A stretch of 64,000 nucleotides of DNA from the NCBI RefSeq assembly GCF_963853765.1, contig NC_088857.1, positions 44,268,001-44,332,000 on the forward strand, read 5' to 3'. This document shows, piece by piece, positions 9,918 through 51,338 of this stretch (positions are counted from its first letter, which is position 1; each line of letters opens with the position of its first letter). The position numbers and the translations under genes were made by a program. Origin of the DNA: Magallana gigas (lineage: Eukaryota). The notes beneath the pieces are model-generated. The model saw nothing but the letters and a program-made list of their open reading frames with translations, was not told the origin of the DNA and made no database searches.

Positions 9918-11593
9918 ATGAACTCAAAGGTCTGTCTTCTGTTATTGGCCGTCATTGCTTGTAAGTAACATTTAAAACTAATTTTATGGCTTTTATTTTC
10001 ATATGCGTTCCAAAATATTCTTATTTTTTATATTACTCCAAATGTAAAAACTTATTAGCTTTGATAATCGATATTTTTAATAAGGTACATCAATGGTCGT
10101 AGTCATTAAATAGAATTTTCCTACCAAGATCAATTTGATTAATTAAGCTTTACGTGATATTAAAAATACGTCATACATATAAGTCTTAAAGGGGCATAGT
10201 TACAATTGTGGTCAAATTCTATTTTTATGTTTTTATTATTTACAATGCTTTAGAAATGATATCTAATGATCAAATAAAATTTGAGAGTCATTCGTAAAGT
10301 TATAAGCAAGATACAGGGCTCACAATTTTTGTGATGTAAACAAGGCTCGCGCCCTGTTTTTGTTTACATAGGTTCAATATACCAGTAAAAAATCTTTTTC
10401 CAGCCTATTTGTCTATCTTTTTATTTATTGTAAGCATAGATACACAGTTCCTAACGTTTAACACATTCGTTTTAGGTTTAAAACTGAAATTTTTACTTCA
10501 ACGTTCAAAATGTATACAAACGCTTAGTTTACATTGCAAGAATTTCATGCTCTGTTACTCGTTTATAACTCAAATAACATCTTTATTTCAAACCAGTTTT
10601 ACTTTAAATCTTCTTTCTGTTCTGTTAAACTAGTATCAAAAGCAAGCTATGATTACGCACCAAAGTACAGCGCCTTCAAGTATGCTGCAGCAAAATTTGT
10701 AGCAGGTGGCTGCGGACCAGGATGGCATCAGTACAACAACCGTTGTTATTGGTTCAGCAGACAAAAGCTCAACTGGTACACAGCCTCAGTAAGTGGTAGA
10801 GATCATAGGACCTGAAATTAAATGTTTCACCGAGGTATTGGTGGTAATTCTTAACGTTAATTGTAGATGAAATGTGCCGCCATGGGTGGTTATCTGGTCT
10901 CTATTGATCAATCTCACGAGAACACGTACGTCAGACACATGTTGAGTGTCTATGGAGGTATGTGGATTCTTTTTTTACGTTAAAACATCGGTGCTGAATT
11001 TCATTTACTTCAGTGAATATCATAACACAGTTTATAACTTAACATTGATTGTAAAGTTAGAGGAGGATCTTGGCTCGGCCTGAACGACATTCTGCGACCC
11101 AACAAACACAGATGGTGCTGGGGATTCGTTGCCAAGCCCTGCCACAAATTTGACTGGTACAGTAACGAACCCGTGTATCATGAGCATGGTGACTACAACT
11201 GCGGTATGTTCAAGAGGTCCTACAAATACCACTGGCACGTCGACAGCTGTGGACAAAAGAACCACTATGTCTGTGAGAAACCACTGGTAAGAATACTATA
11301 TAATTAAAGCACATTCTACTTTTTCACCTAAACTTGTCGTTAACTTTTGTTGAAATTTCTGTTATTAACAAGTAATGTAGTCTCTCAAGTTAATTTATCC
11401 TGATAATTGATTCTACGCTTCAAGAAGTTTATTCATTGGATGACGATTACAGTTCTACGGTTTTATAAAAGAAAGAAATATCATTAAATATATTTATAAT
11501 GCTACATGAAATGGTTACAAGAAATGATTTTAAAATGACACTGGATTATGATTTTCTTTATTGCAGGGAAAACCATGTGTATGTGTGTATTAG
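9918..11593 (+). CDS. Secreted C-type lectin-like (perlucin-like) protein, subfamily A copy A1 (unpaired), 181 aa
   Basis: Exons 9918-9960, 10634-10788, 10867-10957, 11057-11286, 11567-11593, all GT-AG and in frame. Signal peptide MNSKVCLLLLAVIA; CTLD motifs CGPGWHQYNNRCYWF, WLGLND, NCG, DSC, YVCE; ends GKPCVCVY. Confidence 0.9.
10190..10540. mobile_element. Truncated TTAA-type (Kolobok-like) MITE in A1 intron 1
   Basis: Begins TTAA|AGGGGCATAGTTACAATTGTGGTCAAA; internal motifs (AGATACAG, ATGTAAACAA) resemble 13051-13568. No right TIR found; right boundary approximate. Confidence 0.5.
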
Positions 11594-13050
11594 CAGTCCT
11601 ATGTAAATAAAATATATGTACTATCATTTTACGTTGCTGCTTAATGAGTAAATATACCTTTGCAATTACGGAGGATAACTGGATATATTATTGATTGTTT
11701 CCTTAAATTTTATATGTACAATTACAAGTTACAGATTATTTAAGTTTTTTAAGAAATAAAAGTTTATCTTTTGATAAGAGAGATAAGTCTTGCATATGGG
11801 AAACTGAATCAAATGATTGAGATATAGATACTCTTAAACAATGACAGTTATAAGAAATGCCTTATATGCCTGGGGGATTTTTTAAGCATGACTTTGAAAC
11901 TTTAATGCTTTACTTATTAAACATATCTAGAAGAAAAGGTAATATATACATATATTGTTTTAATTTTTAATGAATTTTATGTGCAATTTATATTTGATAT
12001 GTGTACCCTCATAAAATTTTTTTTATCTTATCAAAAAACAATCACAATCGATAGTTGTTTAATCAAATGCAGATGCATATCGAATGTCTTTGTTGTAAAA
12101 AAAAATTGTCCAACTCCTATACATTGTATGTTTTAGAAAATCGATATAATTTATGTTAGATAAATTGGCTTATTTTTTTTTTACATAAAAGCTAGGTTTA
12201 TGTTACATATCAGGGCATTTGACACATGTTTGCATATTGACGTAACAAAAGTCAATTTGAGTAAAGACAAAATTAAAATTGCTATAATACAAAATTTATG
12301 GTTTTATACGAATGCATTGACGTTTAATTTTTAATTTTAATTTTTGATCTGTCCCAAGTTTTTGCTTCCATCACATTCTAAATAAAAATACACAAGTCAT
12401 ACCTATGAAAGAAGTACAGTTGAAATCGACGAAATGGAAAATATCAAAGATATCTTTATTGATTAATTAATCCTTTTCACTCATAAAAGTTTACAGAAAC
12501 GAAAACAAATTTCTAACGGAGATTTATTATGGGAAATGTTTACATCTTTTTTCCATTCGGAAGTATCGGAACACCTCGCGCAATTTTTCAACGTTATCAT
12601 CCGGGCTAAATTATGGCTGATGCAATGCAAAATCCCCGTAGATTTTCTATTTTGGGAAGTGTAATGCAACCTGAAGCGGTAGAGAGGGCGTTTCAAAACA
12701 GATAATCAGGACATTTTTCATATTAGTGGATGAACGTTGTTTAAGCACAAAGGTATTTATAATTATCGAAATATCAAGCAAAAAGTGGTGGAAGCAAAAA
12801 CTCGGGACAGAGTATAAACCAATGAGTACCAAAATTGACTATGTACTACTTCATTTTAAAATTTGATTTTCAATTCCACTCGTTAACTTTTCATATTAAA
12901 CGTGAAAAATTATTTATAACTTACAAAAAAAATTAGATTATGTTCAAAATGATAATAGAGGATGGTCAATTAAGCAAACGTCCGTAGTCTAATTTTACTC
13001 CGTTTTGTCAACATCATTTGGATGTATACAGAATTTTCTGTACACTTTAA

Positions 13051-13568
13051 AGGGACTTGGACACGATTTGAGATCCAAAATTTTATTTTTATTTTTTATG
13101 AATAAAATGGTTTACTGGTGCATTTTAAATGATTTACCAAAATATTGAATGTTAAAATCAAGTTACAAGCGAGATACAGAGGTAAGAATTAATTGCTATG
13201 TAAACAAAGCTTGAGTCTCATGGTTGTTTACAAAAAATGTAATGTAGAGAATTACCATTTCTTACACAAAATGACATGTAAAAACAACTGAAACTAATTC
13301 AATATCGTCATAAATACTATATATTATCAACAATAGAAAGATGCATTTGATTGCAACTTACACAAATACAACAGATATGTAAAAAAAATGGCAATATTCC
13401 AGCTTTGTTTACAAAACAAAGAATTATGAACTCTGTATCTTGTTTGTAACTTGATATCTGACTTTCAAATTTTGACATTGCATTATAAACTTCTATATTT
13501 ATCAATATAAACATTCAAAATAGAAATAGAATTTGAAATATTTTTAGTCAAATCGTGTCCAAGTCCCT
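13051..13568. mobile_element. 518-bp MITE with TTAA target duplication (Kolobok-like)
   Basis: 21-bp TIRs AGGGACTTGGACACGATTTGA / TCAAATCGTGTCCAAGTCCCT; TTAA on both sides (13047-50, 13569-72). Confidence 0.85.
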
Positions 13569-49779: not shown

Positions 49780-50096
49780 CTTGGGACAAGTCCTGATTGG
49801 TGACTTCTGTCAAATTCATCTCGTTTTATAATGTTGACGACATCAGATCAATTTCACTATTTTTGCCCTATTCATGTATGTCAAATTAACCATAGTGTTG
49901 TTGACTTTTGCGCAAATTCAGCAATATAATCTATTGTAATATCTTATATGCAGTTAGGTACACTCCATTAATTTCGTTCATTCATTATAATGCGTTAATC
50001 CTTTTACATGCAGAGTAAAGCTGTTACGTTTAGCAGGTATATATAGTTCATAGTATTTGAAAAAGCAGAAATCAGTTTCCAAAAGATACTGGAGCC
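49780..50096. promoter_or_regulatory. Putative bidirectional promoter, pair 5 (A6/B5), 317 bp
   Basis: Divergent ATGs; TTTTATAATG, TCAAATTAACCAT, TTGCGCAAATTCAGCAA and GCAGGTATATATA present. Confidence 0.7.
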
Positions 50097-51338
50097 ATGA
50101 AGTCGTTTGTAGCAGTCGTTCTTTTGATTTGCCTTTGGGCAGGTAAAGTTCACCTTCTGACTCAAGAAATTTAATAATAGCTTCAAAAATAACAAAGATC
50201 GTGAAATCATTCCAGTTTTATGATTTGCACTAGAATATAAATAAATGCTATGTCTTTTTGTGTTTGTTTTCTTTTGGGGAATTTGAATTGTATAGGTCAA
50301 AATTTGAAGAAAAACAGTGAACTTGTAGGTCTAGATCAAGCGTGAGCATTTTAAGTTTTCTTTGAACTCGTGTAAATATGTATACCCATTCACATACGTT
50401 GTTGTTGATATTTCAGTTGTAAATGCCAGCTATGATAATGCCCCCAAATACAGTGCCTTTGGTTATGCCGCCGCAAAGCTCACTGGCAGACACTGTCCTC
50501 CCGGATGGCTCCAGTACCACCAGAGCTGTTACTACTTCAGCAGAGACAGGCTGAGCTGGTGGCAGGCTTCGGTACTATTCATACTACATGAACTACATAT
50601 AGATAATATTAGCAATTGACATTCAAAGTTCATTGTTTTTAGTTGAATATATCATTTGGTAAGGAATGATCCTTTACGGTGTAAAAACTTGATGTGTTTT
50701 TACTTTTAAAGTAAAAAAAAAAATTCTTCTAATTCAGATGAAATGTGCCTCTATGGGAGGATTCCTGTGTAACATTGATGAAGCTCACGAGAACACTTAC
50801 ATCAGACATCATCTGTCTATGTACCAAGGTAAAATACCCACATAAGTTTAAAAAACCACTTGCTGTATACTCCTATCTAATTCGAGTTTATTTCCGTATT
50901 TTTTTTTATTAAATAAAGCATAAATGGGATTGAAATACGTGTACTCAGTATACGATTTTAATTTTGTAGTATCCCCTGGAGCGTGGTTCGGTTTAAACGA
51001 CTGCTTGTATCCCAACGTCCACAGATGGGGCTGGGGATTCTCCAACAAACGATGCCACAAGTTTGACTGGTATGCTGGCGAGCCTGTGTACCATCAGAAA
51101 GGAGACTATAACTGTGGTATCTTCTGGAGCAGCTACAAATATCACTGGCATGTCGATAGCTGTACCCAGAGGAACTACTACGTCTGTGAAATGAAGATGG
51201 TAAGGATAACAATAATACGGATGACAGTGTTCACTGTTGTTGTCGGAATTTTCATTGAATCAACCTTGAGAACGAAATTAAAATTATACATTATTTTATT
51301 TTTATTTTCAGGGCAAGCCTTGCAAGTGCCAATACTAA
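50097..51338 (+). CDS. C-type lectin-like protein, subfamily B copy B5 (pair 5), 182 aa
   Basis: Exons 50097-50142, 50417-50571, 50738-50828, 50970-51199, 51312-51338. Signal MKSFVAVVLLICLWA. Confidence 0.92.

Follow-up and report, generated by a model that had tools for sequence, protein, structure and literature searches.

What do lectin-like proteins do if the site for calcium and sugar has been replaced in every gene copy? This question is raised by a stretch of 64,000 nucleotides (nt) on contig C5 of the 564-Mb genome of Magallana gigas (G000:C5:44268001-44332000), here called the window. In this window, 11 intact genes for small secreted proteins carrying a C-type lectin-like domain (CTLD) were identified as spliced models, six of type A and five of type B. 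The cluster extends from 9918, the start of the A1 ATG, to 51338, the final base of the B5 stop codon, and these limits match those of an earlier note on this DNA. With fair confidence we regard A and B as co-expressed, dosage-amplified, non-lectin CTLD proteins that are likely to serve as bulk structural material in the foot secretion or cement of the larvae.

Loss of the calcium and sugar site in an intact fold

The window has a GC content of about 32% and few long open reading frames (ORFs). In a six-frame scan, the motif WHVDSC occurred exactly 11 times and W-x-D-x-x-C was not found anywhere in the window, and EPV was located upstream of WHVDSC in 11 of 11 copies. The type A markers HRWCW and KPCH were each found six times, the type B markers FLCN, LNDCL and KRCH five times each. 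The spliced models agree with the scan, so that the claim of the earlier note that both subfamilies read EPV and WHVDSC in all 11 copies holds.

For a comparison with other CTLDs, the site columns were read in an alignment of 87 sequences, consisting of A, B, 15 family members and, as an outgroup, 70 CTLD domains from unrelated multi-CTLD proteins. Residues are numbered from the mature start ASY (residue 1). In the principal site (site 2), the family carries E at position 117 (outgroup: E in 45 and Q in 16 of the 70 domains), P at 118 (P in 68), V at 119 (N in 38, D in 12), Y or W at 126 (E in 45), H at 140 (N in 35) and V at 141 (D in 53). In the auxiliary site (site 1), the D at position 90 is kept (D in 53), and the other positions are P at 94 (E in 29), Y at 120 (N in 29, D in 16) and N at 127 (D in 35). 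Four of the five principal ligands and three of the four auxiliary positions are replaced, and within the site-2 motifs only E117 and P118 are kept. The alignment of exon 4 with DC-SIGNR likewise places EPV over EPN and WHV over WND. The features of a strictly calcium-dependent carbohydrate recognition domain (CRD), namely EPN or QPD, WND, and the Glu two residues before C2 with the auxiliary ligands other than D90, are absent.

The replacement is present in all 11 copies and in the Crassostrea, Saccostrea and Ostrea orthologs, with one Saccostrea A protein reading EPI in place of EPV. It is ancestral to a whole oyster clade, and its 11-fold repetition reflects common descent and not 11 independent events. 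On these replaced positions, the proposal that A and B are not classical calcium-dependent lectins is well supported.

The fold itself is intact as judged from conserved residues and predicted structures. The core cysteines C52, C128, C144 and C152 are present, the last three being invariant and C52 nearly so among the 87 sequences, and the hairpin pair C24/C35 of the long form was found in all copies, so that the six canonical cysteines are invariant or nearly so. W85-x-G-L, W99, W113 and W139 are also present. Pfam PF00059 (Lectin_C) is annotated on the full-length proteins, while single exons give Lectin_C matches below the Pfam cut-off only. The AlphaFold2 models of A and B are compact and unswapped with a mean predicted local distance difference test (pLDDT) score of 78-80 and a core above 90; the C-terminal CxC tail and the N-terminal tail are below 50. 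In a Foldseek search, the A model reached template modelling (TM) scores of up to 0.9 to the solved CRDs of SRCL, DC-SIGNR and CD23.

Divergent A/B pairs, gene models and selection

The gene order is A1+, B1-, A2+, B2-, A3+, A4-, B3+, A5-, B4+, A6-, B5+. Ten of the 11 genes thus form five head-to-head A/B pairs with 317-339 bp between the ATGs. The five spacers align to one another and to two spacers of Crassostrea virginica. They contain two TATA boxes of opposite orientation, located about 45 bp upstream of the respective ATGs, and a conserved block beside the A-side TATA box. The same divergent pairs were found in C. virginica, where the called genes are separated by 283-303 bp, and two such pairs were found in Ostrea edulis. 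Sequences from Ostrea, Saccostrea and Crassostrea occur in both the A clade and the B+L clade of the tree, from which it follows that the split between A and B and their pairing are older than the oyster radiation. These conserved pairs, which the earlier note had missed, are the strongest hint of a partnership between A and B, whose sequences are 66% identical. The two genes of a pair would be divergently transcribed from a shared promoter of about 320 bp and hence made together.

The conserved block that the M. gigas spacers share with those of C. virginica (L003 4308-4610 and 9674-10000) has a TAAT-type core, the consensus being approximately ATGGTTAATTTGACAAACATGATTAAGGCGAAAATATGGAAAT. With its location some 20-60 bp upstream of the A-side TATA box, the block could act as a stage-specific control element.

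The exon limits of the 11 models were set by splice-site inspection. Each copy consists of five exons with GT-AG introns and an open coding sequence (CDS) of 181-183 codons, the three internal introns being in phases 1, 0 and 1. The last exon comprises 27 nt in every copy; the encoded end is GKPCVCVY* for type A and GKPCKCQY* for type B. This gene architecture is shared by the C. virginica ortholog P0002, and seven of the 11 models are identical to M. gigas RefSeq entries named "perlucin-like protein", as given below with the lengths in amino acids (aa).

The first pair is formed by B1 (17573..18961, minus strand; exons 18961-18916, 18434-18280, 18157-18067, 17912-17683 and 17599-17573; 182 aa; identical to P0022) and A2 (19283..20727, plus strand; exons 19283-19331, 19837-19991, 20093-20183, 20300-20529 and 20701-20727; 183 aa). 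Their shared promoter at 18962..19282 measures 321 bp between the ATGs and shows the two opposed TATA boxes and the conserved block. B2 (24413..26197, minus strand; exons 26197-26152, 25383-25229, 25093-25003, 24753-24524 and 24439-24413; 182 aa; identical to P0026) and A3 (26517..27951, plus strand; exons 26517-26565, 26749-26903, 27373-27463, 27568-27797 and 27925-27951; 183 aa) are separated by a promoter of 319 bp (26198..26516).

In the remaining three pairs, the A gene lies on the minus strand and the B gene on the plus strand. A4 (35392..36638; exons 36638-36590, 36398-36244, 35999-35909, 35799-35570 and 35418-35392; 183 aa; identical to P0036) shares 339 bp (36639..36977) with B3 (36978..38312; exons 36978-37023, 37330-37484, 37628-37718, 37974-38203 and 38286-38312; 182 aa; identical to P0027). 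Between A5 (42798..44023; exons 44023-43975, 43652-43498, 43377-43287, 43188-42959 and 42824-42798; 183 aa) and B4 (44355..45626; exons 44355-44400, 44638-44792, 44901-44991, 45279-45508 and 45600-45626; 182 aa; identical to P0024), the promoter extends over 331 bp (44024..44354). The last and shortest spacer, with 317 bp (49780..50096), belongs to A6 (48590..49779; exons 49779-49731, 49411-49257, 49178-49088, 48972-48743 and 48616-48590; 183 aa) and B5 (50097..51338; exons 50097-50142, 50417-50571, 50738-50828, 50970-51199 and 51312-51338; 182 aa; identical to P0023).

The eleventh gene, A1 (9918..11593, plus strand; exons 9918-9960, 10634-10788, 10867-10957, 11057-11286 and 11567-11593; 181 aa; identical to P0038), is an orphan with its own promoter and its own signal peptide (MNSKVCLLLLAVIA...). 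Its upstream region (7400-9917) has no similarity to the shared A/B promoter and contains a TATA box of its own, and its first intron is 673 nt long. The mature A1 protein differs from the other A copies by only 4-6 residues. No trace of a 12th copy or of a lost B partner of A1 was found in the window.

For the transcript check, contigs of public RNA runs were aligned to one pair only, A6/B5. For A6, three of four splice joints were seen (48972/49088, 49178/49257 and 49411/49731); exon 5 appeared as a loose end at 48742, the last intron not being bridged. For B5, all four introns were seen as GT..AG joints. Transcription and splicing are thereby confirmed for this pair, and A and B transcripts were both present in the same RNA runs. 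In run X2 (2024), 468 contig pieces fell on the pair (window positions 48500-51400). The word depth of this run was about 1e5 on the exons of both genes versus 0-40 on the introns, which fits very high and similar expression of A6 and B5, contig depth being a poor measure of expression. The many single-base variants in X2 suggest reads from all paralogs or alleles.

Purifying selection on the copies was analyzed by the Nei-Gojobori method on the mature CDS. Between the copies, exons 2-4 share 94-97% identity. About half of the intron length can be aligned, at approximately 75% identity, so that the introns are effectively unalignable. For type A, the rate of non-synonymous substitution (dN) was 0.011 and that of synonymous substitution (dS) 0.19 (dN/dS 0.056), and for type B the values were 0.002 and 0.20 (dN/dS 0.010). 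The mature proteins of A2, A4 and A6 are identical although their genes differ at 11-18 synonymous sites, and the same holds for B3, B4 and B5 with 10-18 such differences; one example is 0 non-synonymous versus 18 synonymous differences. The copies are under extreme purifying selection; they are therefore old, and it is the protein that is preserved. Because the replaced site is conserved across three genera and dN/dS ranges between 0.01 and 0.06, the replaced state is under selection and is not decay. The five-fold amplification looks like a dosage pattern.

Two other accounts of the repeats were rejected. A large recent palindrome or segmental inversion does not fit, as the inverted repeats are limited to the exons and a few short introns and the other introns are unalignable. 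Gene conversion as the main cause of the identical proteins is not consistent with the 10-18 synonymous sites at which copies with identical proteins differ.

Some further observations concern the locus as a whole. The two longest ORFs of the window (32451-33344, minus strand, 297 aa; 33952-34548, plus strand, 198 aa) both fall within the 7.4 kb that separate A3 from A4, at the change in gene orientation, and neither gave a Pfam match. A (GA)n microsatellite of about 80 nt was found in intron 1 of B1 (18683-18805), and a run of 139 N at 6392-6530, upstream of the cluster, marks a gap or a mask. Several public gene models of the cluster carry artefacts (P0005, P0021 and P0031, the last being K1REI9): in two B models of 264 aa the N-terminal half is duplicated, and in one M. 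gigas model of 156 aa exon 2 of A is read in the wrong frame (MASVQQPLLLVQQ...).

Cysteines and the possible association of A and B

The mature A protein contains ten cysteines (C24, C35, C52, C100, C108, C128, C144, C152, C160 and C162) and the mature B protein 11 (C24, C35, C52, C60, C91, C108, C128, C144, C152, C160 and C162). These numbers and the motifs that contain the extra cysteines had been given in the earlier note, and all of them were found again in the spliced models. The B signal peptides hold one further cysteine, which is lost on cleavage. C108, C160 and C162 are universal across the family. The fourth extra cysteine depends on the lineage, being C100 in A, C91 in the L type and C61 in the P100 type; the C9 type has none, with nine cysteines in total, and B has both C60 and C91. 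Odd totals recur in the family: one Saccostrea A protein has an extra C75 and thus 11 cysteines, and the 11 of B are kept in Magallana, Crassostrea and Ostrea.

Since the number in B is odd, at least one cysteine of B is not paired within its chain. The best candidate is probably C60: B groups with the L type in the tree, and the L type has C91 but not C60, so that C60 is likely a gain of the B lineage. The number in A is even, so that nothing compels A to form a bond between chains, and for an A-B disulfide two of its cysteines would have to be unpaired. The suggestion in the earlier note that A and B form interchain disulfides is therefore only partly supported, namely for B by its odd parity. 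A probable role of C108, the CxC tail and the one lineage-specific partner is to fasten the tail onto the long loop. In B, the cysteine left over, most likely C60, would stay unpaired and be free for covalent cross-linking, either through a disulfide with another subunit or by formation of a cysteinyl-DOPA adduct (DOPA, 3,4-dihydroxyphenylalanine).

The arrangement resembles that of the snaclecs, which likewise consist of two paralogous non-lectin CTLD subunits with a lost calcium and sugar site and extra cysteines in the long loop. By this analogy, the two proteins would form a heterodimer or higher (AB)n oligomer with swapped loops and a disulfide link, which would act as a protein-binding ligand or receptor module instead of a material; we consider this explanation unlikely. 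The absence of the sugar site from both paralogous subunits agrees with it, as does the obligatory co-transcription from conserved divergent promoters, which predicts synthesis at a ratio of 1:1. An odd cysteine number was moreover found somewhere in three of the five oyster subfamilies, and C91, C100 and C108 lie in the long loop.

The earlier note had placed extra cysteines where snaclecs carry their interchain cysteine, and this can be retained at the level of the region only. Relative to the conserved W99, the loop cysteines are located at W-8 (B), W+1 (A) and W+9 (both), whereas the interchain cysteine of snaclecs is at W-4, a position at which A and B would have no loop cysteine. The extra positions are presumably not homologous. 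Furthermore, a single A-B disulfide misfits the even parity of A, the AlphaFold2 monomers show no sign of a loop swap, and the five-fold amplification, the identical products and the huge transcript depth suit a bulk product better than a signalling ligand. Snaclecs also belong to another phylum and are of independent origin, and the CxC tail and the conserved N-terminal Tyr/Lys tail are found in A and B but not in snaclecs.

Relatives, larval expression and probable function

In the whole-genome census, A and B genes were confined to the window, with one further paralog on contig C9. The tree places A, B, the L type, the C9 type, the P100 type and the Pinctada sequences in one clade (support 96/93). 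As in foot proteins, the N-terminal regions of L-type and C9-type relatives are long and rich in K/R/Y or in Gly/Tyr.

In the C9 paralog, a distant one (L001, G000:C9:5957500-5963500; minus strand, about 5105-2154), the N-terminal exon is very long, rich in Lys/Arg/Tyr and foot-protein-like. The CTLD of this paralog contains EPE and WHLENC, and the tiny tail exon GKPCKCQY* is kept (L001 2180-2154). Its Saccostrea ortholog P0078 comprises 502 aa with a pI (isoelectric point) of 10.1 and nine cysteines, an odd number. The L type is represented by P0220 (M. gigas A0A8W8J7S5, 327 aa) with three Cys-rich repeats, a Gly/Tyr/His region and a B-like CTLD that has C91 and not C60. A locus of its own was not found for P0220 in this assembly, in which only the window genes match (B at 67-75% and A at 56-69% identity); it may lie in a gap, and P0220 may be the sixth gene of Foulon et al., CGI_10010615.

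Stage-specific expression of such genes has been described in C. gigas. Of 27,902 genes, 59 were pediveliger-specific (expression below 20% elsewhere), including the consecutive CTLD genes CGI_10006917, -19, -20, -21 and -22, whose proteins share 44-48% identity with foot protein-1 of the pen shell Atrina pectinata (apfp-1) and for which calcium-dependent sugar binding was assumed; expression was low in spat and adult mantle (Foulon et al., PMC6337334). The proteins of CGI_10006919, -21 and -22 were abundant at settlement competence, followed by a sharp fall (Trigg et al., PMC7574277). CGI_10006917-22 very probably is the window cluster, as judged from a shared name (K1REI9, a B-type protein known from the artefactual 264-aa model, carries the same name as CGI_10006917), the consecutive gene numbers and the near confinement of the family to this locus.

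The protein apfp-1 is a DOPA-bearing linker between byssus and tissue with a C-terminal CTLD (PMC4912638). Like A and B, it is a secreted, basic and Tyr-rich bivalve protein, but it has about 200 residues of DOPA repeats compared to a tail of about 20 residues. It is reported to be associated with mannose and calcium, for which A and B lack the ligands. The Atrina apfp-1 sequence was not found in the protein collections searched, so that the tie to apfp-1 consists of the 44-48% identity (PMC6337334) and of its tryptic peptide GLNDVLFPK, which matches the family segment that follows W-x-GL, namely GLND(I/V)L(R/F)P(N)K, and occurs unchanged in P0221 of Pinctada. Relatives from Pinctada fall inside the clade. 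On this basis, the best reading is that A and B belong to a clade of pteriomorph bivalves that includes apfp-1. Paired genes of the A/B type are not known for Atrina.

The mature A and B proteins have a mass of about 19.2-19.4 kDa and a pI of 8.7-9.1. They contain approximately 10% Tyr, 6-7% His, 5% Trp, 6-7% Cys and about 6% Asp+Glu, and no N-glycosylation sequon was found in either. The N-terminal tail ASYDxAPKYxAFxYAAAK is conserved and disordered, with about 20 residues including three Tyr and two to three Lys. Each protein would thus consist of a disordered Tyr/Lys tail, a compact long-form CTLD and the C-terminal tail GKPCxCxY. The CTLD would keep its fold and three canonical disulfides without a site for calcium or monosaccharides. 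The pair appears to have been amplified five-fold with each copy held to a near-identical mature protein, and the genes would be massively switched on in settlement-competent (pediveliger) larvae, the products most likely being bulk structural parts of the larval foot secretion or cement.

Several points weigh against a role in the cement. The link between the CGI/EKC identifiers and the window has no sequence match behind it; the RefSeq accessions of the cluster are not cited in the literature searched, and the CGI identifiers gave no match in the supplements of PMC7574277. This literature covers the stage and not the tissue, and the contig depth of run X2 measures expression poorly. The long DOPA-type repeats of apfp-1 are absent from A and B, and the pLDDT of the tails is low. 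The apfp-1 authors also report effects of calcium and mannan, which leaves room for sugar binding by another route (PMC4912638).

Around the former site 2, the residues E117, H121, H138, H140 and D142 (EPVYH...YxYHWHVDSC) are invariant. They might form a site for a transition metal (Zn, Cu or Fe) or for DOPA, with A and B as obligate 1:1 partners that polymerize through the unpaired cysteine of B and the Tyr/Lys tails, so that the CTLD heteromer would be the brick of the larval cement; we consider this extension quite unlikely as a whole. Neither such a material role nor this chemistry has been described for the CTLD fold. A possible functional analogue of the unpaired cysteine of B is found in mfp-6, a small, basic, Tyr- and Cys-rich protein of the mussel plaque whose free thiols take part in cross-links and regulate the redox state of DOPA. 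It is neither a CTLD nor related in sequence, and the comparison is an analogy only.

Recognition of carbohydrates or patterns could still take place at a non-canonical or calcium-independent site, as in dectin-1, or through E117/D142 and aromatic residues, the glycans being those of periostracal chitin, glycoproteins or microbes. Trp, Tyr and His, which are able to stack on sugars, are abundant in the loop region, and a lectin link between periostracum and adhesive has been proposed (Foulon et al., PMC6337334). However, all four ligands N119, E126, N140 and D141 have given way to other residues (V, Y/W, H and V, respectively), and the stage-specific expression does not point to an immune lectin. 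Mannose binding was assigned to the homologous CTLD of apfp-1, but this claim comes from co-localization with ConA and a structural prediction and includes no direct binding assay of the CTLD (PMC4912638). We regard a glycan-binding function of A and B as very unlikely.

Other CTLDs with a remodelled site 2 offer a more general comparison for the non-lectin reading. Lithostathine/REG, struthiocalcin and the type II antifreeze proteins are, like A and B, compact long-form CTLDs that bind non-sugars; they differ by extra cysteines elsewhere and by the lack of the Y-x-Y-H-W-H-V-D-S-C signature and of paired A/B genes. Type II antifreeze proteins have five disulfides. Perlucin from the nacre of Haliotis laevigata (P82596) is likewise a small secreted molluscan protein with a single CTLD (TM 0.76-0.81), but it shares 25% identity only, comes from another tissue, lacks the GKPCxCxY tail and lies outside the clade as far as tested. 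The automatic label "perlucin-like" derives from this protein and is uninformative, as the match to perlucin is no better than that to lithostathine or CLEC10A.

A role in biomineralization, with secretion at metamorphosis to nucleate or organize CaCO3 when the aragonite of the larval shell gives way to the calcite of the adult shell, is highly improbable: the annotated name, the structural match to perlucin, the action of struthiocalcin and lithostathine as non-lectin CTLDs on CaCO3 and the coincidence of settlement with new shell secretion speak for it, whereas the perlucin match at 25% identity is no better than that of many CTLDs, A and B are basic (pI about 9) with about 6% Asp+Glu unlike typical acidic matrix proteins, and expression is low in spat and adult mantle (PMC6337334).

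The annotation of these genes as "perlucin-like" and their mention as adhesive candidates in the literature are already known. Three features appear to be new within the literature searched, namely the loss of the calcium and sugar site throughout the clade, the pattern of cysteines together with the argument from their parity, and the bidirectional A/B pairs with their conservation. For the biology of CTLDs at large, this is one more non-lectin lineage, unsurprising in itself; because the loss of the lectin site is common in CTLDs, the surprise is moderate.

The cement of oyster larvae determines where reefs and farmed spat establish. As this material is difficult to extract, the proteins of which it consists are not yet known. 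The A and B genes belong to a small number of secreted candidates with stage specificity, and they are regarded as calcium-dependent lectins in the published discussion. The clade-wide loss of the sugar site, the hard-wired co-expression and the unpaired cysteine of B shift the focus from glycan binding to metal or thiol chemistry and hetero-oligomers, and the locus offers a compact, conserved and stage-specific bidirectional promoter.

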